Notes under the pieces: generated by a model | Told to the model about the DNA's origin: nothing | Database searches by the model: none | The model's input: the letters and a program-made list of their open reading frames with translations, nothing else | NCBI GenBank assembly: GCA_002104905.1 | Contig: MCFE01000011.1 | Location: forward strand, 1-64,000 | DNA length: 64,000 nucleotides | Direction: 5' to 3' | Origin: Basidiobolus meristosporus CBS 931.73 | Taxonomy: Eukaryota > Fungi > Basidiobolomycota | Translations under genes and position numbers: made by a program | In this document: in pieces, positions 8,013 through 31,324 of the stretch | Position numbering within the stretch: position 1 is the stretch's first letter | Layout: each line of letters starts with the position of its first letter

Positions 8013-8122
8013 GAGAGGCTGATCGCTTTTACAAACGTATTAATAACCACCCGAGCTCCTTTCCAACACAACCATCGGTCTAGTCGCCTAATTCTTTCAC
8101 GCAACTTTCATACCTTGGAGCA

Positions 8123-11100
8123 ATGGATCAAGAGTTTTCTATCACTTCCCTTTTTCCTTCCCTTAGTGGATGTAACAGACCATCGGCCGGACGACAAGTA
8201 AAATTCTTATCAGCCATTGCCCCTTCTGAAACCAGCGATGAAGTACTAAGCGAGCTTCTGGCCTCTTACGAGCACAACTCCGCTTACACATTTGTACATC
8301 TTGCATGGGGCTATTTACTCTCATGCTATCTTGGCGAGCCTAATGTTGCCTTTTGGAGTTTTCAGCCAAGCGAAGCTCCAGTACCCGCTCTTCTTCATCG
8401 ATTCAATTTTGACGAGCATACCAGTGTCCAACAACATGTACAAAAAGCTCAGGCAGGAGATGCCACTTTGTCTCCTGGGACACTGAACTTGGAGGAGGGT
8501 GTCAAGTCTGCCGATACGCTATTATGCGTTAAACAGAGCTCCGAAAGCCATTCCTGCACCGATGTATCCTCTTGGTCCACAGGCATGCCGAAGGTAAAGA
8601 ATGCTTCCTAAGTGTGCTCATGCCCATCCTTATACTAAAGCCTTTCTTTTTACATTACAGTTCTCTGTGATCATCGAAGTCGCATTCCTCGGTAAGTTGC
8701 CCACTTTCAAGGTTACCTGGAGAGAAGACATCTTCCCACAGTCCCACGGGGAAGTCCTCCTCAACCAACTCCAGACTATTTTACACGAGATGATCTCTGA
8801 TACCAACAGACTACCAAGAAACATAAGCTACCAGAAACACGATATCAGTGAATTATCCATAATTAATCCTCATCCAACGGTTTTGGATGAATCCTTACTT
8901 TTGCATGGGTTGTTCGAACAACAAGCGAAATTGAAGCCATCACACAATGCTCTTGAATTTTTGAACTCCGTCGACTACTTAGATACAGAGCTCGTGGAAT
9001 GGTCTTACGAAAACCTAAATAATAGAGCCAACCAAATGGCACGCTTACTTCTTTCACTTGGGTTGCAGCCAGACGACAGAGTCCCCATCATCCTGGATCA
9101 ATCACCATTTATGTACATTACCATATTAGCTATTCTCAAAGCTGGAGCCGCGTATGTTCCTCTGGCCACTAATTTGCCATTGGAGCGAGTAGAATTCGTA
9201 GTTCAAGACGTTTCCGCGAAAGTCATTGTGACTTCAGATTTCTATTTTGGCAAATTCAACTCGCTCCCTAGTTTCCAACATATCCATTTAATTAACCTAG
9301 ACTCCAAGGCTATCATCGACAAGATCTCCTGCAAACCCGTATCCGACCTCAACAGCACCGTGTGTGTTGGCAAACACCACTTGGCATATGTCATGTATAC
9401 CTCTGGCTCCACAGGAAAGCCGAAGGGTGTCATGATCGAACATGGGAGCGCTGTACAAAGTATACTTGCTCATCAAAAGCTGTTCCAATGGACCGACTCT
9501 TCCAAGTTCCTGCAATTTGCATCAGTGACCTTTGATGTTTCCGTTTTCGAAATCTTCTTTCCTTGGAGTATCGGTATTACTCTATGCGGTGCCTCCAGAG
9601 ATCTGATGCTGAGTAACTTGGAGGAAACCATCAACACGCTATTCATCACTCATATGGAGGCCACGCCAACCATGGCCGCTCTACTACACCGGGCCAAGTT
9701 GCCTACCGTCAATACCTTGATAACTATTGGTGAAATGCTTACCCAGCGTGTTGTAAACGAATGGTCTGACGGATTCCTGCACAACGCTTATGGTCCTACG
9801 GAAGCTGCCATCCATTGTACAATGGCTAGCAGTTTTGCTAGTAAGACCAAGCCTAGCAATATCGGCATTCCCCTCGATACCTGCTCCATTTATATCATGG
9901 GGACCGAGGATAACAGGCAGCCTCTTCCAGTCGGCTTTGTTGGAGAGTTGTACATTGGTGGAAAGCAGGTTGCCAGAGGTTACCTCAACAGAGATGATTT
10001 AACCGGCGCAGCGTTCTTTGAGGATCCGTATATTGCTGGCGGTAGAATCTACAAATCAGGGGATTTGGTTAGAATGCTTCCAGATCGTACATTCGAGTTC
10101 GTTGGCCGTGTCAATGATCAGCAGGTTAAGCTCCGCGGTCAAAGAATCGAGTTGGGCGAGATCGACTATGTCCTCGAGAACTCCCATGAAACGATTTCCG
10201 ATGTCGTCACTTTGGTCCTCAAGCATCCAAAAGCCCAAGAAAAACAGCTGATCTCGTTCATCGCTGCACCTCAAGGAGCTAACGGCGCTGATGGTGAAGT
10301 GCAGATCTATGAGTCGGATTCATTGGTTAAGAACTTGAGACTATCCTGCAGCAACGAAGCAATGCAAAAGCTGCCTCCTCATATGGTTCCTAAAATATTC
10401 ATCATCATGAACAGACTTCCTCGACTGAATTCTGGTAAAACTGATCGTAAGCAGTTACACAGTATCTTTGATGGCCTTGACTGGGATCTATTAGCCAACA
10501 GCAAGCAAAATGTTGAGGGTGATGGTAAGGAAGCTGAGCCTACGGATATCTGGTCGCCAATGCAGTTGATTGTACGCGATACCCTTCAAGAAATGTGCGA
10601 TTCAACAATATCTAGCGTTCAAGTATCCCTCTTCTCTCTCGGAATCGACTCCCTGGGCGCCATTATGTTCTGTTCTAGATTGAGGAAAAAGAATCTTCAC
10701 ATCACCGTATCGCAGCTTATGCAGAATCAGACCATTGAAAAGATCAGCCTGGTGCTGGAGAAAGATACGGTGCTTGTGAGCAGTGAGAAGGAGCGACTAG
10801 ATGCATTCCGAAATTTGGCCAGCTTATCTAGAGATCAAGTTCAAGGACAAGAGAAGTTCAAGCTGCCTCAGACCGGTTTGTTTATTGAGAGCGTTTATCC
10901 ATGCACACCCTTGCAAGAGGGTATGCTTGCCGAGACCCTGAAGTCCACGGATGGCAGTCGCTATTATAACTGGATTCTTTTGGAGATTGACAATTCAGTC
11001 AAAACTGAAACCTTGGAAGCAGCTTGGAAAAATCTGGTAGATAAAAATGAGATCCTACGTACTGGTTTTATCTCCGCTAGTGAGTGTGAGGAGACATTCT

Positions 11101-14100
11101 CACAAGCAGCGTTCCTTCAGTTGTGCTGGTCAGGCAATATGCAAGAGCAATGGAATGTTGTCGGCGTGCAGAGCGATGCAGAATTACAGGCGGTGATCAC
11201 ACAACAAAGACGTATGGCTGGCAAACTTACGTGGGAGAATATTTATTTGCCACCCAACACCTGTTCTTTAATCCGCACTGCGGACAAGGCTTGGTTGTCG
11301 ATCACGATCCATCACAGTTTGTACGATGGATGGTGCTTGCCACTCATTGTAGAGGATCTCCAGAACTATATCCTCGGGAAGGAAGTGCTCAAGCGTCCCG
11401 ATTTCCGCAATGTGGTAGAACACATTCACTGTAAAGACGCAGATGCAGACAGTGAGGCGTTCTGGAAGGAGGCACTGTCGGAGTATCGCCCTTTCGCTTT
11501 CCCAAATCTCACCGGAAAATCCAGATTTAAGGATGTTTCTGCAACACATAGTCTGGAGAAGACATTCAGCATGAAGACTAATGAAGTTGAGGCTTTGTGT
11601 CGATCCCTTAGGCTATCTCCTCAAGTAGTGGCGCAAGCAGCCTGGGCAAAGTTGCTTCGAATGTACACGAATGAGGATGATGTTGCCTTTGGCCTGGTCG
11701 TTTCAGGTCGTACAATCCCGGTAGAGGGGATTGAGCATGTGATTGGTCCCTGTATCAATACCATCCCTTGCCGCATCACCATGGACGACTTGACTCAAAC
11801 GAATGAGCAATTCTTGACCGATATCCAGGAAATGAATACCAACATGATTTCACACACTGGCTTGCCATTGCGTTCAATCAATACTCTCTTAGGGATTAAC
11901 CCGACACAGTCCCTGTTCGATACCCTGTTAATTTACCAGAAAACTTCCACCACTCCTAATGCAACCTCTGAATCTGCTCAGGAGAAGGTTAAGCTTGTAC
12001 ACTCAGATGATCTATTAGAGGTAAGCTGCCAGAATAATTCAATATGGCCTCAGGAACTAACATGGCATTTTACAAACCATAGCACTCTATCTTGGTGGAG
12101 GTAGAGCCACATGGTGATGATATCACTCTGCGTGCTGTTTGTAAAAACCATATCGTGCCTCCAGCTCACACACAAATCCTATTGGATCAATTCAGCGCAT
12201 TCATGTCGGATATTTTGAATAATCTCTCAGGACAAGTTGGAGGAGTCTTGAGAATGGCTAACGAGCAACTTTCGATTGGAAACAAAGCTGCTGAGTCTGA
12301 TGACAAGGCAAGCAGATTACTTATGCATAGCTTCGTTGAGAGGTATGCAAAAGAAACACCTGAAAAGTTTGCTTTGGAATTTGCAACTAGTATCGATTCC
12401 TCAAACGGAACCGCGGAAACGATCAAGCTTACCTACGATGTACTCAATCAAGAGGCCAACAAGATAGCCAATCTCCTACTAGATCGAGGACTCCAGCCTG
12501 AAAATATTGTCCCTATTTGCCTCGACAAGTCTCCCTTCATGTATATTGCTATCTTGGGTGTACTGAAGGCTGGAGGTGCATACGCCCCCATCGACCCCGA
12601 AATTCCAGATCTACGCAAACAATTTATCGTGTCCGATGTGGATGCAAAGGTCTTGCTCACAACAGAGAAGTATGCCACTGTCCTGGGAGAAATGCTGAGT
12701 GTCGATATTGTGGCCTTGGATAAGGAAGATTTGACTGGATACTCGTGTGCTAACCCTCGAGTCCCTCTCACTTCCTCCAATCTGGGTTATTTGTTGTATA
12801 CCTCAGGAACCACCGGAACTCCCAAGGGTGTAATGGTGGAGCATCGAAATGTAACCAGCAATCTGGATTCTATGAAGAAGATGATCTCCTGGACACCGGA
12901 GTCCAGACTATTCCAATTCACGACATTCATCTTCGATGTGTCAGTATTTGAAATGTTCTTCTCCTGGAGCCTAGGTATCACGCTTTGCTCCAGTAGCAAA
13001 GATATTATGCTCGGTGATTTGGAAGGAGTAATCAACTGCTTAAGAGTGACTCATCTGAACCTGACTCCAACCGCCAGTGGTCTTATTCATAGACCAAGAG
13101 TTCCAACCATTTCAGCTCTTATTACTGCAGGAGAGCCACTTACTCAGAGAGTTTTGGATGAATGGGCAGGCGACAATCGCCTCAGTAATGCCTACGGTCC
13201 AACAGAAACCACCAATGTTTGTACCGCCTTCACCAATGTGCAGTATGATACTAAGACCAGTAACATCGGAAGGCCACTTGCTACTTGTTCTGCTTATATC
13301 ACGAACGCTGACATGCAACCAGTGCCTATAGGTGGCATCGGAGAGTTGTGCATAGGTGGACCACAAGTAACCCGAGGCTATTGGAAGAAGCCCGACTTGA
13401 CCTCCGAGAAATTTGTTGAAATCGAGGCTTTGTCTTTTTGGAGGGTATACAGAACTGGTGATCTTGCAAGAATCCTTGCTGATGGCACCGTTGAATTCCT
13501 TGGACGCTTAGATAATCAAATCAAGTTGAATGGGTTCCGTATTGAGTTGGAAGAGATCAATTCGGTAATCGTGCAATCCCACACATCAACTAAAGACGCT
13601 GTTACCTACGCTATTCGCCGACCAGAGCACCAAAATGAGATCCTGGTCTCATTTGCATCAGTAGCTGGTGACCGTGAATACAATAGCTGCGAAATTATTG
13701 ATGTGGCAGACGAATCAGCACCAGAGGTACAGAAGATCATTCAATTGGTCTTCGAAGAAGCCAAGCGTAAGCTTCCAACGTATATGGTTCCCTCGATCGT
13801 ACTTCCTGTTTCTAAGCTTCCTTTGGGGCCTACGGGTAAAGTGAATTCCCAAACATTGAGGCAATTATATTTGGATTATCCCTTGGAGTCATTGAGTAAC
13901 TTCTACGCTGTTGAAGAAGAAGACTCGAACGTAGAGGATGATTCCATTGTGAACACGGAGATTGAAAACAAAATCCGAAACGCTATTGCCGAAACAGCAG
14001 GCCTGACCTTACCTGAAGTTAGAAGCGGCTCAAATATATTCCATCTAGGGTTAGATTCTATCAACGCAATCCAACTTTCTTCTAGATTGCGCAAGCTCAA

Positions 14101-17100
14101 TATTGATCTTACCGTTTCCGCTATTATGAACAACCCAACTCCGAGATTGATGACTCAGTTGTTCCAACAAAACTCATTGCAGGATCCTTCCGAAGTAGCT
14201 ATAGATTCATTAGCCGATACCCGTGAGTCTATGCGCGCATTCTCTCAGAGAGTCAAGTTGGATGTAACCCAGCAACTCGCCATTGACGAAGAAAAAATCG
14301 CTGCGATTCTTCCTTGTACACCTCTGCAGGAAGGTATGGTGGCCCAATCCACCAAGTACGGAAATGCCCTGTATTTCAATCACACAATATTTGAGATCAA
14401 GCTGTGGGCCCATATTTCACGCTTGCAAGAGGCCTGGAATCAAGTAGCTGAGAAAAGAGAGATCCTAAGAACTTGCTTCTGCATTACTAGCGATCATGAA
14501 TATCCCTTCGCCCAGGTTGTACTGAACGAGTGGACCCCTTCGTGGGTTTTCGAAAATCTTGCTAGTCAAGAGGCAGTTGAGAAGGCGATCGATCAGCACA
14601 TCGAGTCTGTTAATCATACCATCGAAACGAGCCGTCCTCCAGTTTGCTTCGGTGCTTTCAATGGACCAAATGGGGTTTTTGTCGTCATGTCGATGCACCA
14701 CGCTCTCTATGATGGTTGGAGTTTGCCTTTGTTATTGGAGGATGTCCAAGCCGCATACTACAAGCTCAAACTACCGATAAGACCATCATTCCATCAAGCC
14801 CTCGAATACATTCATTCGGTTGATAAGGCCGGTTCTCAAACATTTTGGAAGAATATGTTGAGCTCCTACGAGCCTGCTATGTTTCCCGACTTGACAGGAC
14901 TGGTGAACAAGCCGAACTCGGTGATCTGCAGTACAAGATCCCTGGTTAGCAAGGCCAAGATGTCAGAATTAAACTCGATCTGTAGAGCTTTACAAACAAC
15001 AGTGCTAGCTGTTGGTCAGGCTGCTTGGGCAAAATTGTTGTCCTTCTACGTGGGTGAAAATGATGTAGTATTCGGACATGTTCTCTCTGGAAGAACAATC
15101 TCGATGGAGAAAGTGGAGGATGTAATTGGCCCTTGCTTCAATACAGTCCCATGCAGAGTTGAAATCAACCCATCAAAGACCAACGAGGATCTATTCAAAT
15201 CTTTACAGAAGTACAATACGGATGTTATCCCCTACCAGCATACACCATTGAGATCCATCTTGAAGGGACTCGGTAACCTTGATGGATCCCCCTTGTTTGA
15301 TACAGTATTTTTGTACCAAAAACTCAATTCCAGTGAATCTTCACACGAACAGCTATGGGATATTATTCGTGATGAGAGCCAGTTGGAGGTATGCCTATTT
15401 ATGTGATCGTTCTTTGGCCCATTCACTAACATGCTTTAGTTTTCGGTGATGATCGAGCTTATTCCAGAAAAAGATGACAACCTGGTGCTGCGTATCACTT
15501 GTCGCAACACCGTAATGCCAGTAGCCCAGAGCGAACTACTTTTGAGCCAGCTGGATGATATCATATTAGACATCGTGCATCAACCCACTCAGTCATCCGC
15601 ATTGGTGGGCCGTACTATGCGCGAGAGTAGCTTGTCAATTAGTAATCCTCAACCCAAGTACTTTGTCAATGATAAGGAACTGCTATTGCATCAGCTATTC
15701 GAGATCAGTGTTGCCAAGAATCCCCACGCCACTGCATTAGAGTTTATGGAGGAGATGAACGCTTCCGAATCTCAAAAATGGACTTACCAACAGCTGAATG
15801 ACGAAGCCAATCGAGTAGCAAATCTGTTACTCTCTTGCGGTCTTCAGCCGGATGACGTTGTACCAATTTGCATGAACAAAGGGCCTATGACATACATCTC
15901 GATTTTGGGTGTATTGAAGGCGGGTGGTGCCTACTGTCCTGTTGATCCAGAAGCCCCGGTAAGCAGACAGCTCTTCATTATATCTGAGGTTTCGCCTCGT
16001 GTCGTGTTGACCGTCGGTAGTGATATCACCGAAGAGCTGAGACCTTATCTCTCTGAGGAGGTCAATCTAATCGATCTGAGCGCCGAGTTGATGGCAAGCC
16101 AGTCCACTGCTCAACCGCATCCTCAAGGGCTGACAGATAGGCACTTGGCTTACGTACTGTATACTTCAGGTACTACTGGAAAGCCTAAGGGTGTGATGCT
16201 CGAACATGCCAGTGCAGTGCAGAGTATTCAAACCCACCAAAGTCTATTGTGGTGGGAGGAATCCAGTAAGTTCTTGCAGTTTGCAACTTACACTTTTGAC
16301 GTGTCAATCTATGATATGTTCTTCTCTTGGACTGTCGGAATCTGTCTTTGTTCTGCCTCCAAGAAACTTTTGCTTGGGCAGCTGACGGAGCTGATCAACG
16401 CCATGGAGATTACCCATCTGGATTTGACTCCTACGGTTGCTGGATCTCTCTCTCGTAAGGACGTCCCAAGCATCAAGTCATTGTATTGTATTGGTGAGGC
16501 CCTTACCCAGAGAATAGTGAACGACTGGGCTGATGACGGTTGTCTGGTTAACTCATACGGACCAACTGAAGCGACCATTGCTTGTACTATGAGACGAGTT
16601 ACTGGCGAACATAAGGCTAGTAATATTGGGCTTCCATTCCAGACATGCTCGGCCTATGTTCTGTCCAAACAGGGTCACCAGATACAGCCCTCCGGTTGCT
16701 TAGGAGAGCTTTGTATAGGAGGGCCCCAACTTGCCAGAGGATACCTTGGTAATGTGACCTTGACTGCGGAGAAGTTTATGCGTGTACCAGGAATCGATGG
16801 ATTGCTATATCGTACTGGTGATATTGTCAGACTACTTTGCGATGGAACATTCGAATACATGGGACGTATGGATGATCAGGTCAAGCTAAACGGTTTCCGT
16901 ATTGAGTTGGATGAAATCAATACTGTCATTGCTGGATCTCATCAATCGGTTGAAGACGTGATCACCCTTGTTATCCGCCATCCTCAACTGGCACGAGGCC
17001 AACTTGTCTCCTTTCTCGCCACACAAGCTCGTGACGATGGTGACTTCTCACCGGAGTTGATAACTGACCCAACCTTGAAACAAGAGTTGATCCAGGCTTC

Positions 17101-20100
17101 GTTGAGCCAGGCAAGAAGCACTCTTCCTGCATACATGGTTCCCGGCATCATACTACCCATCAACAAGATTCCTGTTGGAAGTGCAGGAAAGGTGGATCGC
17201 AAGAGACTCATGGCAGTGTTTACAGGCATGAGCAGTGTCTCCCTCCAAACGTACCTTGATCCTTTAGGTGAGCTGGACACTGATGACAGCAGCTGGAGTG
17301 AGATTGAACGCAAGATTCGAGACATCTTGGCAGAGGTCACACAGACCTCTTCAGATTTGATTGGCAAGAGATCTTCGATCTTCCAACTTGGACTTGATTC
17401 CATCAGCGCTATCCAGTTGTCGGCTAAATTACGCGAGAGAGGCATTAATATCTCAATTATTGATATTATGAGGAATCCTTCGGTCCAATTAATGGGCGAG
17501 TGCTTGCAAAATCAACTTGGTGCTGGCGTCGCTAACGAGGAAGAAATTGCTAGTCAAACCCGCTCCATCATTAAAGGGTTTGCTGCTAAGATCGAACCTC
17601 AGCTGGGCGCACAATACGAGGGAGATGTGGTGGCCGTCTACCCATGTACTCCTTTGCAGGAAGGGATGATAGCACAAACATTAGGGCTTGGTGGAGCATA
17701 CTTCAACCATATCATTTACGAACTCATTCCTACTATTGACATTTCACGCTTAGAACAGGCATGGCTGAAGGTCATCGAAAGCAACGAAATCTTGAGAACA
17801 AGCTTCTTCAACACCGATGATACTGAGTTTGTCTACGCTCAAATTGTTCACAAGAAGGCTTACATGCCATGGACAGTGAGAGAGGTACAAGATTTCGAGG
17901 AGGTTCAATCGATATCCGATGAGTACATGCAAAAAGCATGGAAACAAACTGAGAATTTGCAGCGTCCACCTATATCATTTACCGTGTTCAAAGGATCCGA
18001 GAACTCATGGTTACTTGTATCAATGCACCATGCCATATACGATGGCTGGTCATTGCCATTGATTGTAAAGGATGTATTCGATAGCTACAACGAAAAGCTT
18101 TCACTGAGACCTCAATTCTCTCAAGCTTTGGAATCCATCCTTTCATACGATAAGGCCGCGGCCGAGGAATTCTGGAAGCACCATCTGAATGATTATTCTA
18201 GTGCGATGTTCCCCAATATTACCAATTCCAGGAAGCAGATTTCCGGAAGCCATTTGGTGTCAAAAGTAGCTACACTCAAGCTAGTCGATATTGAGCATGC
18301 CTGCCAATCACTGGGAACCACTGTGCAGGCAGTAGCTCAAGCGGCTTGGGCAAAGATTCTCTCTGCGTACATGGATATGGATGATGTCATATTCGGCCAC
18401 GTTATTTCAGGAAGAACTATCAGCAACACCGATTTAACCGAGATAATCGGACCCTGCTTTAACACCATTCCTTGCCGTGTAACAGTTAAGGAGGTGGAGA
18501 CGAATCTCGAGCTCATTCAAAGAATCCACGACGACAACATTCAAGCTCTTTATCACCAATGCACCCCATTGAGATCGATTCAAAAGTGGCTTGAGGTGCC
18601 GAATGGATCTTCTCTTTTTGATACTATCTTTATTTTCCAAAAAACCGAGAAGGGTGAAGCAGGAGATAACGCGCCAATCTGGCTGGAGAAAGAGAACAGA
18701 GGAGAGGTTGAGGTAAGTAGATATACGAATGTTGATTTGACTTCTACATGGCTAATTTAAACTGTTCAGTATGCGCTATCCATTGAATTGGAGCCTACAG
18801 AGAATGGTGCTCTTAGCATCAGTCTGGTGTGCAAAAACGCTACTCTTTCGAAGGAACAATCCCAGATACTCTTGGAGCAATTCGAAGGCTTGTTTATGGA
18901 CTTACTCCAAAAACCGCACAGCCGAGTCAAGGACTACAATGAAGATGTTTTGCCTTCACAACTTCTTTCAATTTGTAATCCTTCTCCCGTAGTGTATGAT
19001 GTTGGCGCACGTCGCTTTATGCACAGTTGGGTCGAGGACTTTGCCATCAGCAATAGCGATAAAATCGCCCTAGAATTTGCTACCGAAATTTATGCTTCCG
19101 GTGCTGAGACAACTCAGTGGACTTTCGAACAGCTAAACGGTGAAGCTAATCGCGTAGCTCACTATCTCATCACTTCCGGAATTGAAATTGAACAACCAGT
19201 ACCCGTTTGTATCCCTAGATCACCATTGATGTATGCTACAATCCTTGGTGTTACTAAAGCAGGAGGTGCCTACGTCCCAGTTGATCCAGATGCACCCTCC
19301 GATCGTAAGAACTTCATCATCGAGGATACTAGGGCTAAACTAGTCCTAACTGTTGAAAGCCTTATTGACCAGTTCGTCGGTAATGGTGTTAATGCTATTG
19401 CACTTGATACCAGCGACTCCCTGGCAAGGCAGCCTACGACGAACCTTGATCTTGAGAGTCTGCAACCCTCAAACTTGGCATATATCCTGTATACTTCCGG
19501 TACTACTGGCAAACCTAAAGGTGTACTAGTAGAACATACAAACGTGGTCCACAGTATAACGGCATTCAAGAAAATGATCAAGATGACGCCAGCTTCCAAG
19601 TTCTTACAATTTGCTTCTTGCGGATTTGATGTTTCGATTTTCGAGATGTTTTTGTCTTGGAGCGTAGGAATCTGTGTTTGTGCCGCTAGCAAGGATCTTA
19701 TATTGAGGGATATTGAGTTGATGATCAGCTCAATGGGTATTACTCATGCCGATCTTACTCCCAGTATGGCCGTCTTAGTTCGTCGTTCTCACGTGCCCAC
19801 CCTCCAATGCTTGGTAACTGGTGGTGAAGCATTAACTCAGCATGTTCTTGATGAGTGGGCTGGTAATGGCTTGTATAATGCATATGGCCCTACCGAGGCC
19901 ACCATTGGTTGTACAATGCTTTGTAATGTTACCAAGGATGCAAAGGCTAGCAATATTGGCAGAGTATTTGAAAATAGTACTGGCTATGTCATGTCTGCTT
20001 CAGGTCGATTCGAACCAGTTCTCCGTGGTTCTCCTGGCGAGCTTTGCATTGGTGGGCCTCTAGTTACCAGAGGGTACCTCAATAGACCGGAACTTACTTC

Positions 20101-23100
20101 GGAGAAGTTTGTTAGCTGGCCCAAGGGCGGCTCTCAAGTTCTGTACAGAACTGGTGATCTTGTTCGTCTCACCGCCGATAATTCCATAGAGTTCTTGGGA
20201 AGAGCTGATAGCCAGGTTAAGATCAACGGTATTCGGATTGAGCTAGACGAAATCAACAACACCCTCAGAGCAGTCGAAGAAAGCGTTCAGAGCGTTTTCA
20301 CCATCCTTGCTCAACACCCTGAGCAATTGAAGAAGGAGCTTGTTTCTTTCGTCGTTTTGCCTGATCTTAAGGCGGCATCTAGCGGTGGTGTAACCATCAC
20401 AGAACTTTCTGATAGTGAAATTACCAGAATCAGGAATATTGCCAGTGCGCTTATTCAAGAGGCCAGACGTATGCTACCTGCTTACATGGTACCCCACCAT
20501 ATCCTCCCTATTGCGACCCTTCCTTTAGGAAATACCGGCAAGGCAGATGAGAAGAAGCTGATCAACATGTACAAGAGCACCGAATTGCAGGCCTTGCAAT
20601 TGTTACACGCAGGAACAACTTTGGTTACTAGGCCATGGACTGGAACTGAAGAAATCATCCGCAAAATTATTGTACAGATTTCGCCCGTACCCGAAAGTAA
20701 CATCAATCAAGGCTCATCTATATTCCAGCTAGGATTGGATTCCCTCAGCGCAATCCTTCTCTCGTCGAAGCTGAGAAAACAAGGCTTTGAAATATCTGTT
20801 TCGCAGATCATGCAATACCCTGTGATCGAACAGATGGCGCACTGTTTAGACTCTGAATCGTCTGAATCTAGCAATGAGCAGAGTTTGATTGAAGAAGCGC
20901 GAGTTGCCATCAAAGAGTTTGAAAATTCAAATAGAGTTCTTGTCGCAAACCAAATTGGCATATTAGAAAGTGACATATCAGCAATCTACCCATGCTCACC
21001 TTTACAAGAAGGTATGATTGCGCAATTCCTGAAATCGGACAAGGCTGTGTACCTCAATCACATCCTGCTTGATTTGGAATCGAAAATCGACTTGGAGAAG
21101 CTACGTGAAGCATGGAGATGTGTCGTTCGCACACATGATATTCTGAGGACCTGCTTTTGCCTGCTAGATGGCCAAAAGTATATCCAGGTGGTATTGTACG
21201 ACTCCGATAAATATGAAATGTCGTGGGAAGTTAAGTCAGCCAACAGTGAAGACGAGTTAATCACGCTGATTGAAGAAACTGAAGCCGAGATTTCCAAAGA
21301 ATTGACTCTCCAGAGACCACCAATCCGCCTCACTGTATGCCATTGCGCCACCAGAGTTTGTCTTTTGATTTCCATCCACCATTCTCTGTATGATGGATGG
21401 AGTTTACCTCTAATTCTTGATGACGTTTACCGCTGTTACCGTGGCTTCTCTCTACCTGTCAGGCCACAATTTGGAAACTTCATTGATTATGTCGCTGCAA
21501 GAGATATGGACCTTTCAAAGCAATATTGGAGAAAGGCACTTGCGGATTCAACTCCCACTAGTTTCCCTGAACTGACAGGAACCAGAGGTATCCAGAACGC
21601 GGCAAGCCACGTTGCTTCACTCACATCGAGACTTAAGAACAGCGAGATCGAAGCAGCTTGCCATAATATGGGAACTACAGTACTTGCTCTAGGTCAGGCA
21701 GCTTGGGCGAAATTGCTTTCATATTACGTTGGAGAATCAGAGGTTGTCTTCGGGCATGTGGTTTCTGGTAGAACTATACCTCTTGACGGTGTTGAAGACA
21801 TCGTTGGTCCATGCTTCAACACTATTCCTTGTCGTGTAGAGGTTAACGAAGGTGTGACCAATGTTGAGCTTCTGCAAGCTATTCAACAGGAGAATGCACG
21901 CGCTCTTGCTTATCAGCATACTCCTTTAAGATCGATTTACAGATGGATTAATCGTGTGGATGATCAGCCCCTTTTCGATACGCTATTCTTGTATCAAAAG
22001 AATCCTTCCGAATCTGGGAACGTGGAGGAGAGACTATGGAAGGTTGTCGATGGTAAAGCTCAAATAGATGTAAGTGTCAAATATTCCTCTATGTAGTCCG
22101 GTTCGCCTCCTGACCGTTTTTCTAGTATTCGATCTCCATTGAATTGGAAGCCGGCTCAACAGACGAATTTGTTATTCACGCAGCTTGTAGAGATATCGTC
22201 GTACCTCCAGGCCATTCCAAGATATTGCTGAGACAGCTTGATCAAATTTTGGTGGAAATAGTAACTAATCCACAAAGGCAGGTCATGCAACTAGACATTG
22301 AACCTAGTTGTATGTCGATAATGAACCCGGAACCTCAAATTTTCGATCCTACAAACACTGGGTTGATGCACACCTTGTTTGAGAAGAATGCCGCTGACAT
22401 TCCCGAGAAGATTGCTTTAGAGTGGGTTCTAGACTTTGATGATGATGATAAGCCAGTGGTTGAAAGTTGGAGCTTTGAGTCTTTCAATCGCGAAGCAAAC
22501 AGAATCGCGCATCTTATCTTATCGAAGAGTTCTTCCAAATGTGTAGTTCCGGTTTGCATCAAGAAGTCACCTCTCATGTACATTGCCATATTGGCAGTAT
22601 TGAAGAGTGGAAATGCATATGTCCCTGTCGATCCTGAATTACCGGTGGACCGTATCCTGTATATGATTGCGAATGTTGATGCCCCAGTAGTCCTCACTAC
22701 CCAAGACATTGCCGTTTCACTTAACGAAGGGTCAGGCAAGGGCCCGGCAATACTACCCCTCGATATTTTGGGCAGCGATTTAGCCAGTCAATCCACTTCC
22801 AACCCAGATGTCATTCTCACAGCCAATGATCTAGCCTATGTCCTATTTACCTCAGGAACCACTGGCCTGCCTAAAGGTGTTATGATCGAACATGGAAGTG
22901 TACGTGAAAGTATTGCCGCCTTTAGCAGTATCTTGAAGCATGGTTCGAATGTGAAGTTCTTGCAATTCGCTAGCTTCTCGTTCGACGTATCTATTTGTGA
23001 GATATTCCTGTCCCTGAGTCGTGGCTACACATTATGCTCCGCGGCTAAAGACTTCTTGCTCAGCAATCTCGAGAGAATCATCCAGAAAATGGAGGTTACG

Positions 23101-26100
23101 AATGTCGCTCTTACGCCAAGTGTAGTCAGTATTATCAATCGGAAGAATGTCCCATCAGTGAGGGTGTTTGTTGCTGGTGGAGAAAGCCTTACTCAACGCG
23201 TTTTGGATGAATGGACCGATGGAGATGTTATTCTTCAAAATGCATATGGTCCTACTGAGACCACTATTGGCTGTACTTTGAACCAACGAGTTACTCGTCA
23301 TTCCAAGCCAAGTAATATTGGTGGTACTCTACCTAGTTGCTCCGCATTTGTATTGTCGTCTACACTTCAATTAGTGCCACTAGGTGGCATAGGAGAATTG
23401 TGCATTGGTGGCAAGCATGTTGCTAGGGGCTATCTTAAACGACCGGACTTGACAGTTGAGAAGTTTATTACCATGGAGATATTAGGAAGATCGGAAAGAA
23501 TCTATAGAACTGGTGATCTTGTTAGAATTCTGCATGACGGATCTATCGATTTTGTTGGGCGAATGGACGATCAAGTCAAACTCAACGGGCTTCGTATTGA
23601 GCTTGAGGAGATTAATCATGTCATTCTTCAAGCAAGCGACTGTATTGATGATGTTGTAACCCTAGTGATCAAGCATCCTGAACAACAAAAAGCCCAGCTT
23701 GTGGCTTTCATTGCCACTAGCCTTATCGCTGATAATTCGGAAGATCTTACTGTATTAACTGGATCTGCGGTAGTTGATGAGCTCAAGCCCATCATTAGAG
23801 CAGCTTTGGATGCAGCCGCAAGAAAACTCCCAATGTACATGGTGCCAAGCCACGTTTGCTTGGTGAACAAGATGCCCCTTGGTACAACCGGAAAGGTCAA
23901 TCGAAAATTACTTACTCAAAAGTATCAAGGTCTGGATGAATCAGTCTTCTTGGGTAGTGATATTACTCAAGATGACTACCAGTCCTGGGCGAAGCAAGAG
24001 CAGAAGATTAGTGAGGCCATTTCAGAGGTTGCCAATGTTCCTCTAAATGAAATTGGACGTCACTCTTCCATTTTCCAGCTTGGTCTCGATTCGATCAGTG
24101 CGATTAAGTTGTCGGCCAAACTCAAGGATAGGGGAATAATTTTATCGGTCTCTGACATCATGAAGTACCCTACCGTTAGCCGCATGTTCAACTACCTTGA
24201 AGAGAATTCTGATGTGGTATTTGAAGATGTAGAAGAGACATTGCAAAAAACTAGAGTTCTTTTCCAAGAACTTGAGGATGAAGTTAGATCATCAATCACC
24301 GAATCCTTGAAGATTTCTGATGATGAAATCCTGGCGATTTATCCCTGTACACCAATGCAAGAGGGAATGATCTCGCACACACTACAGTCAAGTGGAAAGC
24401 TCTATTTTAATCACACAGTCTTTGATTTGAAGTCATTTGTTGATGTCAATGCTTTGAAGGAAGCCTGGATGTCGTTAATTCAAAAGAATGATATTCTCCG
24501 AACCAGCTTCTTCCCTTGCAACCACACTTCATTCAGCTATCTTCAAGTAGTTAATCGTGACGTTTGGATGCCTTGGTCTGAGATAGAGGTTGATGAGAAC
24601 TGTGATATGAATCAGTTAGTAGAGGAGCATATCGAAACAGCTGTCAAGGAAACCCAGAACATGCAACGTCCCCCAATAGCGTTTAGCGTTGTCAAGAAGC
24701 CAGAGCAAACTCTACTAATTATGTCGTTGCACCACGCACTTTATGATGGATGGAGTTTGCCGTTAATGCTACAGGATGTTCACACACTCTATTTCGGAGA
24801 ACCAGTACCCGAACGCCCTGCCTATAAGAATATGGTTGAATATATTGTGTCGCGACCAGAGAGTGAAGCAAACGCTTATTGGTCACAAGCTCTAGAAGAT
24901 TGTAATGTATCGACATTCCCATCTCAAGGTGATATCTTAGATTCATCCAGTGCCTTTATCGTCAACATGGATGAGATCTCTTCAAGTATGTCTGTTCAAG
25001 ATATTGAGGCTATATGCCAATCTCTGGATATCACTATGCAATCAGTAGGCCAAGCTTCATGGGGAAGGTTATTAGCTTGCTATCTTGGTGAAAGCGATGT
25101 CACGTTTGGACGAGTTGTATCTGGAAGAACCGTACCAGTAGAAAACGCCGAAGCGATAATGGGACCTTCTTTCAATACTATTCCATGCAGAGTCACTGTT
25201 GATCGCTTTGATAATAATGCAGATCTCACTCGTGGGCTTCACCAGATGAATGTTGAAAGTATCAAATACCAGCATACTCCGCTAAGAACAATTCTAAAGC
25301 AAGCCAACAAATCGACCAATGGACAAAAACTCTTTGATACATTGTTCTTGTATCAAAAGGGCGAAGGTACCAGTGGTGATAATGGCCGTATACTGTGGGA
25401 TATCGTAGACGGAAAAGCAGAGATTGAAGTAAGTACTTTTGGCATCGATCACCATAAGTACATGTATTCTAATATTGAGTTTAGTTTTCTGTTAGTGTTG
25501 AAATTGAACCATTAGGCGATCAGCTAATGCTACGCGCTGCTTGTAAGAATAGCGTAATGACCAAGCATCAATTGAGAATGATGCTTGAGCAATTGGATTC
25601 CCTAATGGTAGACTTGTTGGAGAATCCTGCGGGTAGCCCCGAATCATTCACCGAGTTACCTCAGAGGTTGATGTCTCGAGGAAACCCTAACCCAGAATCC
25701 CTTGGCACTGGACCTGTATCACTCCTGCATCAATTTGTCGAGAAACACGCCGAAGAAACCCCCAACAAGATTGCTTTCGAATTTGTTCACTCGATATCTG
25801 ATTCCCATATTGACGTTAGCAAATTCACCTACGCTGAATTTAATCGCAGAGCAAATCAAGTTGCCAATTTCCTCTCAAGTAGGAATGTCAAGCCAGAAAC
25901 CATCATTCCACTGTGTTTCGAGAAGTCTATCCTCATGTACATGAGTATTATAGGAGTTCTGAAGGCAGGTTGCGCTTACGTACCAATAGATCCTAAGGCG
26001 CCCTCAGACAGAAAACGGTACATCATACAAGAGGTTGAAGCCTGTGTAGTGTTAACATCGAAATCTTTATCATCTGGCCTTATCGTCGAGAATGAGGATC

Positions 26101-29089
26101 CTGTCGAAGTGATTTGTCTCGATGAAGTCAACCTCTCGACTCAGATGGATAGTAATCCTCCCGTTACCATTTCTCCGAGCAGTTTGGCATACGTTCTCTA
26201 CACCTCAGGAACCACAGGTGTACCGAAGGGTGTTATGATCGAACATCATAGTGTTGTTCAATTCTTTGCCTCTACTCACCGACTCTTACCATGGGAGTCT
26301 GACTCTAGATTCTTACAAAACGCGAGCTATTACTTTGACGTCTCGATATTCGAGATGTTCTTCACTTGGAGTGTTGGAATAACTATCATATCATCCACCA
26401 ACGATAATTTGCTAAGCAATTTAGAGCTGGTGATCAATTCATCAAGAATCACCCATGTTGCCATGACTCCAACAGTGGCATCAATGTTCCATCGCAGCAA
26501 CGTACCAACTGTTAAATACTTAGTTGCTGGTGGAGAGATGTTGACACAGCAAGTTATTGAAGAATGGGGCGACGGTTGCTCTCTGTTCAACGCCTATGGG
26601 CCGACAGAGATCACTATTGGATGCAGTCTGCTATGTAACATGGATAAGACCATGAAGCCCAGTAATATTGGAAGTATATTACATACTTGCTCATGCTACG
26701 TCGTATCTCCTAAGTCGCAAGTGCTTCCTCGTGGCAGTGTAGGAGAGCTTTGCATTGGTGGCCCCCAGGTTGCTCGTGGATATCTGAAACGCCAAGATCT
26801 TACGTCACAGAAGTTTATTGCAATCCCAGGCATCAATGAGCGGATCTATCGCACTGGCGATCTTGTGCGTATGCTACAGGATGGCTCAATTGAATTCATT
26901 GGAAGAATTGACGATCAAGTGAAGCTGAACGGACTACGAATTGAACTCAGCGAAATCAGTACAGTCATATCCAAATCGAGCGATCTCATCGAGGGCGTGG
27001 TGACCTATGTTCTCAAAAACCAATGGCAAAGTAGAGATCAACTGGTGTCGTTTATTGCATGCTCTGCTGGAAGTTCTTCAGAGTCATTGGCATTACTAAG
27101 CGAGGAATCAGATGTCGCTATTGCTAAGACCATAGTCAAGCTAGCGCATACGGAGGCAACGAAGAAGCTACCATTATACATGGTACCTAGTTTGATTATA
27201 CCGATCAACAAACTTCCTCGTGGCAACACCAATAAGACCGATCGTAAGGTGCTGGAGCAATTATATAATAGCTTAAGCTTGGAAACGATCGAACGTATCT
27301 CTTATATGGAGGATGATGAGACGGAAGAAAGCGTTCTATCTGAAGTAGAGAGCACCATTAGAGACGTACTGGCTGAAGTCGGCGAAATCTCGCCCAACAA
27401 GATCAAGGGTACTACATCTATTTTCCATCTTGGTCTGGATTCCATTAGTGCGATCCGCGTATCTTCCAAATTACGCTCTATCGGATTAAATCTTACTGTC
27501 GCTGATATTCTTCAACAACTTACCGTCAAAAATATGGCCCGCCTGGTGAATCAAGAACAAGATAATTCGCGCACAAACTCAATTTCTGGAGCATCGAAGA
27601 AAGCTGTTCAGCACTTAAGTACTGAATTCTTTGAATCGATCCCGGCATTATTGAATATTCCTGATGCTCCTATCGAGACCGTTGCACCTTGTTCACCGGC
27701 TCAAATCTTCACAATTTCTTCGTGGCAAAATTCGAAAAAGGCAAACTTTATGTCGTACTTTGCTTTCAAGAGTTCGGAGAGACTAGATTCAACCAAGCTA
27801 CAATCCGCCTGGCTGTCATTACTTAAGCAACACAGCATTCTTAGAACTGCCTTTGTTGCTACATCTGACTTCAAGATGCCCTATGTCCAAGTAGTTTTGG
27901 AACAGCCAGTTCTTGATTGGACCGTTGACGAATTGGACAAGGAATTAGATTTGGACTTTATTAAGGATACCATCGCTAGACGAGCTTCAGTCCCTGTTCG
28001 CCTTGATCAACCTCCAGTTCATGCTCATTGCATTAGGTTCTTGAGTAGCACCGTTTTAGTAGTCGGGCTTCATCATGCCCTTTATGACGGCTGGAGTTTG
28101 CCGTTGCTATTGACTGATCTCGAGAGTGCCTATCATGACATCAATCATTCGACTAACAGTCCAGGTTTCTCTGGATTCCTAGACTATGTATTTTCGCAAG
28201 AAGAGGAATCCCAGACTAAATACTGGAAGAAATACTTGCAGGATTCCGTGCCTTTGATGTTCCCAGTAATGAATCCGAACACGCAAACGGAGTCGCGTAC
28301 GTTTGTGCTCATTTCAGATGCTTTGAACAACGTCTCTCGATATGAAGAATTATGCCGTGAGCATCAAACAACAATGCAGGCTATCTTCTTAGCTGCATGG
28401 GCAACCCTCCAATGCGATATGCTGGAGTCGGGCGATTCACTCTTTGGACTCTATCATTCGGGCCGCTCCGCCCCTGTTGACGGAATTAGCATGCTTGCTG
28501 CACCTTGTGTCAATATGCTACCTCTATATGTCAAGAATGCCAAGACAATGGGATTGGTCGAACTTTCTCTCAAAATCCAAGAGGATTTGGCTCTTCAGAC
28601 ACCTTATCAACAGGCATTTATTCACGATATTCAACGTGTTGTTGGATACCAGGGCAAACCATTACTTAACACCTACGTGAACTACCTTAAGTTCTCTGAT
28701 GAGGGCTCATTAACTGGGATGTTTGATGTCCTTGATGTAAGTTGATCCATTTATGTTTATAAGCCACCACAGGTACTAATTGTGCTATGTTAGCTCCTTT
28801 CTTCAAGTAACCAGATCAAGGCGATTCAACAAGCAGCTCATTTGAATGATAATGACATATCACTGAATCCAGCAGCCTCCTCGATTAAGGTACAGATCCT
28901 TCAGCACATATTTCTATGATTCATTCTAACAATTTTTGTCTATAGAGTGACCTTGATATCGAAATCTCAGTCAGAGGAGATCAGGCATGGGTAGGCATCT
29001 TCTGTCAACCTAATATTCTGTCAGAAGCCCAAGCAACGGATATGATCCATAAGCTTTGCAACATTGTGCGTGACGCTTTTCCCCTCTGA
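8123..29089 (+). CDS. Hexamodular nonribosomal peptide synthetase, ferrichrome-type siderophore synthetase family (SidC/Nps2/Sib1-like); partial C-(A-T-C)x6; about 6,834 aa, 9 exons
   Basis: Exons 8123-8593, 8661-12020, 12083-15388, 15440-18712, 18770-22069, 22126-25428, 25485-28736, 28794-28889, 28946-29089. All are joined by phase-0 GT..AG introns with CTAAC/CTAAT-like branch sites, and the frame is preserved. Six A domains ((Y/F)TSG(S/T)TGxPKG, N(A/S)YGPTE, Y(R/K)(S/T)GD, A10 Lys), six T domains (LG(I/L)DS) and six C domains (HH(A/S)(L/I)YDGW). C-terminus IKSDLDIEISVRGDQAWVGIF...FPL*, no TE or R domain. Confidence 0.93.
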
Positions 29090-30181
29090 TCATCATTAGA
29101 CTGTGTCCAGAGATCGTATAGGACCATCCTCATGTATCAAGCAATTTAAATAAAAACAGTTCAAACACAGATCGTGAGCTTGAATTATTTGTGCCCCTTG
29201 GTGGTTTTAGGGGAAAACCCCGATTGATTGTAGATCAATTTGAAAATTGGCCTTCAATAACCCGAAATATATAAAGCCACTCACGCCCGTTACTACTAAT
29301 GGCACCTACCCGCAAATCGGCAATGTGACTACTTGCATATACGTAAATAAAAACGAAATTTGAGTAAATTTTGAACTTTCAGAGAAATCGTTAGGGCCGA
29401 ACCTGAATAGTTCCATCTATATTTACATCATCATCCTTTGCAGATAAGCTTAATAGTGAGTATACTTCGGAGTAAGCTAATTGACATCACTAATTTATGC
29501 ATAAATGTTTGTAATTTCTAGAACCAGATCAAAAAACTGATGATCTTTGAAACTGGCTGACAATGTGAGTGTACGTTACCTCTGATGAACTAATCACAGG
29601 GCCTAATAACTGACTAATCGCAACGAATCATTACAATTTGCGAAGACGCGAATTTCCCATTGAATGAAATAATGATGACAATGGCCGCTTCAATGCATTG
29701 GCTGTCGATCTCCATTGCCTCTTCCATGACTTTGCTAATGCCTTATATTGATGCGTCGTTCCGCAAACGATGTGTCTCTAGTAATTAATATTCCAACGCC
29801 GTTGCTGGCGGGAATAGATTCCCAATGTCCCCGATTGGCTATAGACCTCGTCACTGATGATTAACCACTAATTATGAGGTGTCAGAGTTTTCATGGGTTT
29901 ATCAGTGCATAGCATCATATATGCTGCGAATTCATTGCATAGTAATTTCTTCAACTTGATGAGTTTGAAATTTTGTTTGTTTTGGTTTAGCATAACCGGT
30001 CTGGGACCGAAATCATCGACAAGCAGCATGCTACGAGCACTATCCTTGAAACCCCAATGATATATATGACACGTAAGTTGTGTTGAAAGAAAAGTCATCA
30101 GTATTGCGGTGCCATGAAGCCTTATTTAAGTTCAAAAATAATCACACATTCTACCAGCTCACTTTTACTCTGCTTCCTACT

Positions 30182-31324
30182 ATGAAATCATTCCTGAATA
30201 TATCGATTGTGGTGTCAGCTCTGGCTTCCGTTACCCAGAGTATCCCCCTCAGCTCCGGAATGCTACAGCAATCACTTTTCCAACCCCTACAGTGGACGTT
30301 CGATTCTATCTTTGACGAGCCGCCGAAAGGCAAAAAATCCATATTAGATACCATTGTCTGGGACCCTCAATTCAAACGCTTGGCAGACATCGTTCTTAAT
30401 GATGATGGACTCAAGAAGATCCTAGAAAATCCCGATGCGCAACTTACTCTATTCGCACCCATAAACGAGGCCTTTATTCATTACGATGACCACCCTCATG
30501 GCAAAGAGCCTAGCAAGGAAGATATTTACAATTGGATCGTTTACCACACCTTGCCTGACGCGCTGAGCTCCAAAAAAATCGCAAAGTCCCATGTGCTTGG
30601 TACTCAACTCAATTCGCCGGAGTTGAATGACCAACCAACCCCTGTGCGAATTGGACATTGGAAAGGCGATACTTATATTAACTTTTCCAAAGTGACAAAG
30701 GCAGATATCCATGCGACCAATGGTGTGGTTCATGCCATCAATCATGTTCTTATTCCTCCACCTTCAATCTTCGACGGCCTTCATTTGATCCCTACTGGAT
30801 TTAGTACACTTACATCTGCCATCCATGTTAGTGGTTATGGAGGCGATTTCGAGGGCTTCAAAGGAGTAACGGTGTTTGCACCCACCAACAGAGCTTTCCG
30901 TAAGTTGGGCTACAAAAATCTTGCCGAACTATTCGCACCCGACAATCGTGATACTTTAAGGAAGCTTGTGGAGTATCACGTATCATCCGAGCTAGTTTAT
31001 ACTAACGAGATATTCAAAAATCGCGGAAACCATGCAGCGCTAAGAATTCCTACCAACCTTGGAGATGGGTATGAGTTGGACATCAAAGGCGAATCTGCCA
31101 AAGGCGGCCAATACAAAATCACTGTCAACAACGCACGTGTACTGGTCTATGACGGAATAGCCAAGAACGGTGTTGTTCATGTAGTTGATACTGTTCTTGT
31201 CCCACCTCATCATGATGAAAATGTTAGACGCTTATTAACCGAAGTTGAAGACGAAAGCTTATGGGCTGATGAGCAAACTGTCAATGACCATTTCAACTCT
31301 CTTCCTAAGAATTGGTATATGTAG
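30182..31324 (+). CDS. Secreted fasciclin (FAS1) domain protein, two FAS1 repeats, 380 aa
   Basis: Signal-peptide-like MKSFLNISIVVSALASVTQS; FAS1 motifs TLFAPINEAF...ATNGVVHAINHVLIPP and TVFAPTNRAF...AKNGVVHVVDTVLVPP; single exon, ATG at 30182. Confidence 0.9.
   Translation: MKSFLNISIVVSALASVTQSIPLSSGMLQQSLFQPLQWTFDSIFDEPPKGKKSILDTIVWDPQFKRLADIVLNDDGLKKILENPDAQLTLFAPINEAFIHYDDHPHGKEPSKEDIYNWIVYHTLPDALSSKKIAKSHVLGTQLNSPELNDQPTPVRIGHWKGDTYINFSKVTKADIHATNGVVHAINHVLIPPPSIFDGLHLIPTGFSTLTSAIHVSGYGGDFEGFKGVTVFAPTNRAFRKLGYKNLAELFAPDNRDTLRKLVEYHVSSELVYTNEIFKNRGNHAALRIPTNLGDGYELDIKGESAKGGQYKITVNNARVLVYDGIAKNGVVHVVDTVLVPPHHDENVRRLLTEVEDESLWADEQTVNDHFNSLPKNWYM

Follow-up and report, generated by a model that had tools for sequence, protein, structure and literature searches.

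The first 64,000 nucleotides of contig MCFE01000011.1 from Basidiobolus meristosporus CBS 931.73 (the window) contain an intact nonribosomal peptide synthetase (NRPS) gene with six complete modules, each made of an adenylation (A), a carrier (T) and a condensation (C) domain. The gene structure, the substrate pockets of the A domains and the orthology of the A and C domains make it likely, in our judgment, that its product is a siderophore synthetase of the ferrichrome type and of the NPS2 lineage, with a full set of six modules that work colinearly. In SidC, Sib1 and NPS2, one A domain for N5-acyl-N5-hydroxy-L-ornithine (acyl-hydroxyornithine; AHO) serves three carriers by inter-module loading. 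The window enzyme, in contrast, would assemble its product in strictly colinear fashion, with each carrier loaded by its own A domain.

In the scheme that we propose, A1, A2 and A3 would load small residues, by orthology Gly, Ser (or a similar residue) and Gly, and A4, A5 and A6 would each load one AHO onto their own carriers. C1 to C5 would join the residues, and the terminal C6 would release the hexapeptide by head-to-tail cyclisation. The predicted product is cyclo-(Gly-Ser/X-Gly-AHO-AHO-AHO), a ferricrocin- or ferrichrome-like iron chelator, with the AHO precursor supplied by a fused ornithine N5-monooxygenase/acyltransferase that would be encoded elsewhere in the genome.

A single intact gene with six modules

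The gene occupies positions 8123-29089 of the + strand. Its predicted splice model has nine exons with 20,505 coding nucleotides, encoding about 6,834 amino acids, and not one stop codon interrupts the 20.5 kb of exon sequence. Six long open reading frames (ORFs) of about 1,100 codons each lie on the + strand between 8.6 and 28.7 kb, and Pfam identified one AMP-binding, one PP-binding and one Condensation domain in every one of them (E-values 1e-8 to 1e-74). We translated the exons and searched them one by one. The resulting domain order starts with the C-terminal half of a C domain and continues with (A-T-C)x6, and the encoded protein contains neither an extra T-C repeat nor a thioesterase. 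Given the Pfam E-values of all A, T and C domains and the 20.5 kb of stop-free exons, the six-module pattern is not due to chance.

Exon 1 (8123-8593) carries the start codon and the N-terminal condensation-domain remnant, of which only the C-terminal half is present. Pfam returned no match for this exon at E<=0.001; its FPSLSG...AWGYLLSCYLGEPNVAF segment aligns with the FPxLTG...AAWAKLLSxYxGExDVxFG part of C1-C6, and the chytrid homologues have an N-terminal start resembling it. The next six exons each correspond to a module. Exon 2 (8661-12020) encodes the end of the C remnant, A1 (8889-10472), T1 and most of C1; exon 3 (12083-15388) encodes A2 (12290-13873), T2 and C2; exon 4 (15440-18712) encodes A3 (15653-17224), T3 and C3; exon 5 (18770-22069) encodes A4 (18983-20575), T4 and C4; exon 6 (22126-25428) encodes A5 (22339-23928), T5 and C5; and exon 7 (25485-28736) encodes A6 (25692-27269), T6 and most of the terminal C6. 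Two short exons, 8 and 9 (28794-28889 and 28946-29089, stop codon included), complete the C-terminal end of C6, so that the gene ends 350 nucleotides past the main part of that domain. The SDLDIEISVRGDQAWVGIFC segment of exons 8-9 aligns with the C-terminal IDLEVAV...GLYC and DMDLEIAVRG...GVFC segments of the chytrid proteins. C6 is predicted to be the releasing and cyclising condensation domain.

The core motifs are intact throughout. Motifs A3-A10 are present in all six A domains (among them SGTTGxPKG, FDxS, NxYGPTE, GELxIGG, YRTGD, GRxDxQVKxxGxRIELxEI and the A10 lysine), as are the serine of the DS motif in every T domain and HHxxxDG in every C domain. The window modules are nonetheless only 33-43% identical to one another.

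Eight GT-AG introns of 51-67 nucleotides separate the exons (8594-8660, 12021-12082, 15389-15439, 18713-18769, 22070-22125, 25429-25484, 28737-28793 and 28890-28945, all on the + strand), with branch sites of the fungal type, resembling CTAAC or CTAAT. The first seven are in phase 0 and fall at an identical position in every C domain, after ...(E/D)-(V/I/L)-(E/D) and before (Y/F)xxSIE. This periodic intron site is shared with the homologues in Spizellomyces punctatus and Powellomyces hirtus (loci L002 and L003); an ascomycete locus (L001), in contrast to the window gene, lacks it. The recurrence of one site in every C domain and in the chytrid genes suggests that the modules multiplied as intron-containing genomic DNA.

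Pocket codes and predicted substrates

We extracted the ten-residue pocket codes by two methods, anchoring on motifs (FDxS, xTPx, xGE, xYGPTE and GK) and aligning 679 A domains with a hidden Markov model; PheA numbering was verified against an alignment with LgrA. Both methods returned, letter for letter, the codes that the original prediction had read by hand: DVFEIIAIHK (A1), DVFNIAANVK (A2), DVYDYISIAK (A3), DVFDVGAIGK (A4), DVCAVGAIGK (A5) and DVFAVGAIGK (A6). As claimed there, A4-A6 share VGAIGK and the codes of A1-A3 all differ. The span given for the six domains, 17000-27300, does cover A4-A6, but of the first three domains it takes in only the tail of A3.

Reference pockets of 17 positions were taken from Table 2 of Bushley, Ripoll & Turgeon 2008 (PMC2644324). 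A1 is best matched by Schizosaccharomyces pombe Sib1 A1, which is assigned Gly (10 of 10 code and 15 of 17 pocket positions); the earlier suggestion that A1 is a Gly-type domain is borne out by this identical code. A1 also has His331, a feature of NPS2-type ring-residue domains. A2 is ambiguous between Sib1 A1 (10 of 17 pocket positions) and Cochliobolus heterostrophus NPS2 (ChNPS2) A2, assigned Ser (9 of 17), although it shares the rare Asn330 with NPS2 A2. The best reference for A3 is ChNPS2 A3 (DMYDYISFCK), which is assigned Gly despite a crowded pocket (7 of 10 code and 12 of 17 pocket positions). For A4 it is Fusarium graminearum NPS2 (FgNPS2) A3, an AHO domain with the code DVLDIGAIGK (8 of 10 and 14 of 17), and the same domain is the best reference for A5 and A6 (7 of 10 code positions each). 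The likeness of D-V-x-D-(I/V)-G-x-I-G-K to hydroxyornithine-activating domains that the original prediction had noted likewise held up against FgNPS2 A3, Sib1 A3 (DVLDIGFIGK) and ChNPS2 A4 (DVLDIGGIGK). Among single A domains in the PDB, A4 is best matched by the SidN A3 structure, 3ITE (290 bits). SidC A3 has been shown biochemically to load L-AHO (Jenner 2023, PMC10192304).

Since the ten-residue code is a poor predictor for these enzymes, we leaned on orthology for the substrate assignments. On that basis A1 is predicted to activate Gly, A2 a Ser-like small residue (the least certain of the six assignments), A3 Gly through its crowded, Tyr-rich pocket, and A4, A5 and A6 AHO. The colinear order X-X-X-AHO-AHO-AHO of the original prediction is backed by both the codes and the orthology, with the substrates themselves predicted.

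A4 fits the pattern DV(L/F)D(I/V)GxIGK of AHO domains in the NPS2 lineage, which have a large pocket with Gly301 and Gly331, and A5 and A6 keep both glycines. At position 278 both have Ala where A4 has Asp, and A5 also has Cys at 239. The lack of Asp278 and the Tyr-rich A3 pocket had been taken as signs of a new ferrichrome variant with unusual residues. We considered this in a broader form, in which the enzyme belongs to the ferrichrome family and its product is non-canonical, with other ring residues or with differently acylated hydroxyornithines on A4-A6. The substitutions in A5 and A6 would fit such a product, as would the ambiguity of A2 and the diversity of the pockets in the A5 orthogroup, and ferrichromes with other acyl groups and ring residues are known. 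Position 278, however, varies among accepted AHO domains, being S in AnSidC, C in Umsid2 A2 and G in FgNPS1 (Bushley 2008, PMC2644324), and the A3 pocket is the conserved pocket of NPS2 A3. Both flagged features are therefore ordinary for the ferrichrome synthetase family and call for no unusual residues in the product. The chytrid and Basidiobolus genomes also hold a single type of fused acyltransferase, with no hint of several acyl donors, and the pocket code is a poor predictor for these domains. We regard a non-canonical product as unlikely. A second possibility, that A5 and A6 are inactive and A4 is used iteratively as in known enzymes, is also unlikely, because A5 and A6 keep all catalytic core motifs.

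Phylogeny of the A and C domains

A-domain trees were built with IQ-TREE under LG+G4, by a quick and then by a careful method. The paired supports given below are from the careful tree; in these trees the root of the family is placed with uncertainty. The clade of NPS2-type and SidC-type A domains (support 100) takes in all six window A domains and excludes the other chytrid NRPSs as well as the Sid1-like six-A enzymes. Within the clade the six domains belong to six separate orthogroups, each with chytrid members.

The A1 orthogroup (100/99) contains chytrid, Saitoella, NPS2 and SidC-type A1 domains. A2 groups with the A2 domains of NPS2, Saitoella and chytrids, as a clade in the quick tree (98) and in a further tree (95) and as a basal grade in the careful tree. 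NPS2 and Saitoella A3 are in the A3 orthogroup (90/94; 88-94 across trees), and NPS2 A4, Saitoella A4 and the SidC-type A3 are in that of A4 (100/97). The A5 orthogroup (99/97) consists, besides the window domain, only of chytrid domains. The A6 orthogroup (96/81) unites chytrid terminal A domains with the fifth A domain of the Saitoella coloradoensis enzyme. The sister group of A4 is A6 (98/88), and A5 is sister to this pair (97/88); A1 pairs with A3, and A2 lies near A4/A6 in the careful tree. The C-domain tree shows C1 (99), C2 (96) and the terminal C6 (97) as orthologues of NPS2 C domains, and its C6 clade comprises the terminal C domains of chytrid and Saitoella enzymes and of the NPS2 and SidC types; resolution is poorer for C3-C5. 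Among the proteins examined, the window gene alone has all six orthogroups, one each, in order. Their sharing between chytrids and Basidiobolus is compatible with vertical descent and with transfer, and may reflect either.

These trees bear on a different account of the architecture, in which a trimmed ancestor regained A domains by recent internal duplication, so that the six-A form is secondary and says nothing about the ancestral one. Lineage-specific duplications of A6-type modules did occur in Spizellomyces 'palustris', Rhizophlyctis and Phlyctochytrium, and A5 groups with A4/A6 instead of with A3: forcing A3 and A5 into one clade, a hypothesis from the literature that we tested after the tree was known, costs 42 log-likelihood units (-42 lnL; p-AU 0.03, approximately unbiased test). 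The window A4, A5 and A6, however, do not group most closely with one another. Each belongs to an orthogroup of its own with members from several chytrid orders, in the case of A6 also with Saitoella, and identity between the modules is just 33-43%. The separate, shared orthogroups and the low identity between modules indicate that the triplication predates these lineages, and we consider a secondary origin of the six-A form improbable.

Comparison with known ferrichrome synthetases and with chytrid enzymes

The closest characterised enzymes are those of the NPS2 lineage, namely the ferricrocin synthetases ChNPS2 and FgNPS2 and the ferrichrome synthetase Sib1. A1-A4, C1, C2 and C6 are their one-to-one orthologues, the pocket codes are near-identical, small residues come first and AHO last, and the enzymes end in a terminal C domain with no thioesterase. 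They differ at the end: NPS2 and Sib1 close with T-C-T-C and have no A domain in modules 5 and 6 (the A2 of Sib1 is degenerate as well), whereas the window enzyme has complete A5 and A6 domains. An A-less C-terminal T-C-T-C repeat is typical of the described family members (Types I-V), and the window gene does not have one. Because its modules 5 and 6 contain complete A domains with intact motifs, the gene represents a new architectural variant of ferrichrome synthetase. It is not a new kind of system; judged from its sequence it is a colinear, hexamodular form of the known ferrichrome synthetases, with a chemistry that is predicted.

SidC of Aspergillus and SidN A3 of Epichloe (3ITE) belong to the same A-domain superclade, and the SidC-type A3 lies in the orthogroup of the window A4. 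With its three A domains, SidC works in a non-linear way, in which T3, T4 and T5 are all loaded by A3 and Gly is added iteratively by A2 (Jenner 2023, PMC10192304). The window enzyme differs in having an A domain of its own for each carrier.

Its architecture closely resembles the hexamodular ancestral ferrichrome synthetase hypothesised by Bushley 2008 (Fig. 8, PMC2644324). Each is made of six full A-T-C modules, of which three are assigned to ring residues and the other three to AHO, and the window A1/A3 and A4/A6 pairs, with A2 nearby, group as predicted for modules 1/3 and 2/4/6. The two disagree on A5, which the model places with A1/A3 and which in the window groups with A4/A6. The ancestor is also a reconstruction, whereas the window gene is extant.

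In an exhaustive search against 1.84 billion representatives, the nearest full-length relatives were uncharacterised chytrid NRPSs, from Spizellomyces, Rhizophlyctis, Gaertneriomyces, Phlyctochytrium, Powellomyces, Nowakowskiella, Dinochytrium, Thoreauomyces, Cladochytrium and Fimicolochytrium. After the chytrids came Saitoella, followed by enzymes of the NPS2 type from Neolecta, Protomyces, Lipomyces and Lineolata. A word search with module 4, within a restricted length window, pointed to early-diverging fungi and NPS2 fragments; its top match was on a metagenome contig with a typical NPS2-type gene (A-T-C x4 plus T-C-T-C). The Logan contig of P0002 (SRR30452384, 12.5 kb) encodes an NRPS of several modules whose frames, like those of the window, run to about 1,100 codons; one of these frames, 48% identical to module 4, is the closest relative of that module that we found.

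The chytrid enzymes of Spizellomyces sp. 'palustris' (TPX70384), Rhizophlyctis rosea (KAJ3033198), Gaertneriomyces (KAJ3184337), Powellomyces hirtus (TPX56965) and S. punctatus (XP_016607543) share with the window protein the N-terminal C remnant, the periodic intron and at least three AHO-type A domains with the DVFDVGAIGK code; this exact A4 code occurs in two to three consecutive modules of many chytrid proteins. None of the chytrid NRPSs examined, however, keeps all six orthogroups in order. The Gaertneriomyces and Powellomyces enzymes lack module 3. Those of Spizellomyces 'palustris' (P0121) and R. rosea (P0122) have six A domains of types 3-4-5-6-6-6, having no modules 1-2 and extra copies of the A6 type; since they combine a single small-residue module with as many as five of the AHO-like kind, they may make a different peptide, rich in hydroxamates. 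The S. coloradoensis enzyme (P0273, 6115 amino acids) keeps A1-A4 and A6 and misses only A5 (A-C-A-C-A-C-A-C-C-A-C). By its predicted domain order it stands midway between NPS2 and the six-A form.

Six A domains in colinear X-X-X plus three AHO-like order are also found in Sid1 (AS2488059) of Acremonium persicinum and in the ascomycete NRPSs of Conoideocrella (KAK2601699) and Elsinoe (TKX24276). In the latter two, three identical DVYTEGAIGK domains follow X-X-X. Their A domains, unlike those of the window, form a separate clade outside the ferrichrome synthetases, with an internal triplication of its own. This agrees with the different origin reported for Sid1 (Jenner 2023, PMC10192304), and P0189 and P0193 are probably Sid1-type enzymes.

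Promoter sites and precursor genes

Further evidence comes from the region upstream of the gene. ATCWGATAA, the extended site of the iron-responsive GATA repressors SreA, Fep1 and Urbs1 (Schrettl 2008, PMC2610380), occurs five times in the window, at 6680, 7440, 7718, 7920 and 8004 (region 6680-8012), and all five sites lie within 1.45 kb upstream of the start codon. Shuffled sequence would give 2.33 such sites per 64 kb, and the Poisson probability of five in 1.5 kb is about 4e-9 (P ~4e-9). The flanks of the sites are unrelated, so the sites are independent. Iron probably represses transcription of the gene, with a SreA-like GATA factor as the mediator.

Making AHO takes two activities, the N5-hydroxylation of ornithine and its acylation. 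In S. punctatus and P. hirtus the NRPS gene is transcribed divergently from an adjoining gene of about 700 codons (L002:6449-8548 and L003:4446-6584, both on the - strand) that joins a Lys/Orn N-oxygenase (Lys_Orn_oxgnase, PF13434) and an Acetyltransf_8 domain (PF13523) in one polypeptide. Locus tags and shared contigs indicate the same pairing in Thoreauomyces, in Dinochytrium and at a second Powellomyces locus. Proteins with this hydroxylase/acyltransferase fusion (P0309-P0318) come from chytrids and Basidiobolus, and both Basidiobolus ranarum and B. meristosporus encode one (P0316, P0317). B. meristosporus also scored positive for siderophore activity in the chrome azurol S (CAS) assay (Tabima 2020, PMC7466969).

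A number of observations weigh against a colinear ferrichrome synthetase. The fusion gene is absent from the window by tblastn with the S. punctatus and P. hirtus fusions at E<=1e-3 (at E<=50 the sole match is 24 residues at 6233-6304, E 0.3, which we regard as noise), and no recognisable ornithine hydroxylase, acyltransferase or siderophore transporter gene was found in the 64 kb. The linked hydroxylase and acyltransferase genes that mark a hydroxamate siderophore cluster were likewise not found there, and Pfam searches of the flanking ORFs turned up, at a distance of 27 kb, a transporter of the sugar-type major facilitator superfamily (MFS) and, at 1-714 (- strand), a weak P-loop fragment. 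ATCWGATAA had no match in the equivalent upstream regions of two chytrid homologues. As to the substrates, the ten-residue code is stated to fail for these fungal A domains (Bushley 2008, PMC2644324), and the literature substrates for NPS2 A1-A3 were themselves deduced from product composition; the A2 pocket is split almost evenly between its two references, and in the A5 orthogroup, whose members are all uncharacterised, position 331 is G, N or L.

The missing precursor genes would fit an enzyme that descends from ferrichrome synthetases and still makes a cyclic hexapeptide but has lost its siderophore function, with modules 4-6 accepting plain ornithine, lysine or other long residues. In chytrids the hydroxylase/acyltransferase gene is tightly clustered with the NRPS, in contrast to the window, and Basidiobolus has many NRPS genes of varied kinds. 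The AHO code of A4 is, however, almost unchanged (DVFDVGAIGK) and common to many of the clustered chytrid enzymes, the iron-type GATA sites are concentrated in the promoter, and the fused hydroxylase/acyltransferase is present in Basidiobolus genomes. We therefore consider such a loss of function very unlikely and favour a synthetase that would draw its AHO from the fusion enzyme encoded elsewhere.

Genomic neighbourhood

The genes flanking the NRPS encode a fasciclin protein, a dual-specificity phosphatase, a calmodulin, an ankyrin protein, the sugar-type MFS transporter and a PHO80-like cyclin, among others. The MFS gene at 56.4-58.2 kb was considered as a siderophore transporter and set aside, as it is of the sugar-transporter type and not evidently a siderophore carrier. 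A link to an ABC transporter was also dropped after tblastx of the P. hirtus ABC gene gave no match in the window. The fragment at 1-714 (-) has only a sub-threshold Walker-A match.

The locus is shared with B. ranarum. Module 6 is 65% identical to a B. ranarum fragment (P0019), and on the B. ranarum contig the module-6 orthologue is followed by a fasciclin gene (L004:6524-7663), as in the window (30080-31324). The presence of the fasciclin gene after the NRPS in both species shows that the locus is syntenic, although the B. ranarum assembly breaks inside the NRPS. The PHO80-like cyclin is 73% identical to a B. ranarum protein and 51% identical to one from B. meristosporus.

Upstream of the NRPS, positions 700-8100 form an AT-rich stretch of about 7 kb (GC 37-38%) with almost no open frames. 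In L002 and L003 the hydroxylase/acyltransferase gene lies directly upstream of the NRPS; none is recognisable in window positions 700-8100. The Pfam screen of the flanks (outside 8100-29100) also returned one Elong-fact-P_C match (E 1.5e-14) and two MIF-domain fragments. The C-terminal domain of elongation factor P is unexpected in a fungal nuclear region.

Discussion

Ferrichrome synthetases are the textbook case of non-linear logic in fungal NRPSs. A phylogenetic study inferred in 2008 that they descend from a colinear six-module enzyme, at that time unobserved (Bushley 2008, PMC2644324), and the sole six-A candidate reported so far, Sid1, has been judged to be of separate origin. 'SID/SIDE' A domains are enriched in Basidiobolus (Tabima 2020, PMC7466969), where the hexamodular architecture was not reported. 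In our searches of the literature we came across no account of a hexamodular ferrichrome synthetase in a living organism, nor of ferrichrome synthetases from chytrids or Basidiobolus.

The window gene may be a present-day form of the six-module enzyme from which all ferrichrome synthetases descend, kept in a Basidiobolus-like zoopagomycete, with partial versions surviving in chytrids and Saitoella. We give this reading about an even chance. If it is true, the non-linear inter-module loading of SidC, Sib1 and NPS2 evolved by loss of A5 and A6, and the three AHO modules arose from one AHO module, not from the paired 3-4 to 5-6 duplication proposed in 2008. The window gene offers a natural colinear counterpart with which to compare carrier loading and the effects of A-domain loss.

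A 2023 review and a 2024 preprint treat Chytridiomycota as having no hydroxamate synthesis or SidF/SidL homologues. Together with the chytrid fusion/NRPS clusters, the window gene suggests, contrary to such statements, that hydroxamate siderophores are made in Chytridiomycota and Basidiobolus. If the enzyme does represent the hexamodular ancestor, ferrichrome-type hydroxamate synthesis would predate Dikarya and would be present in lineages now said to lack it.

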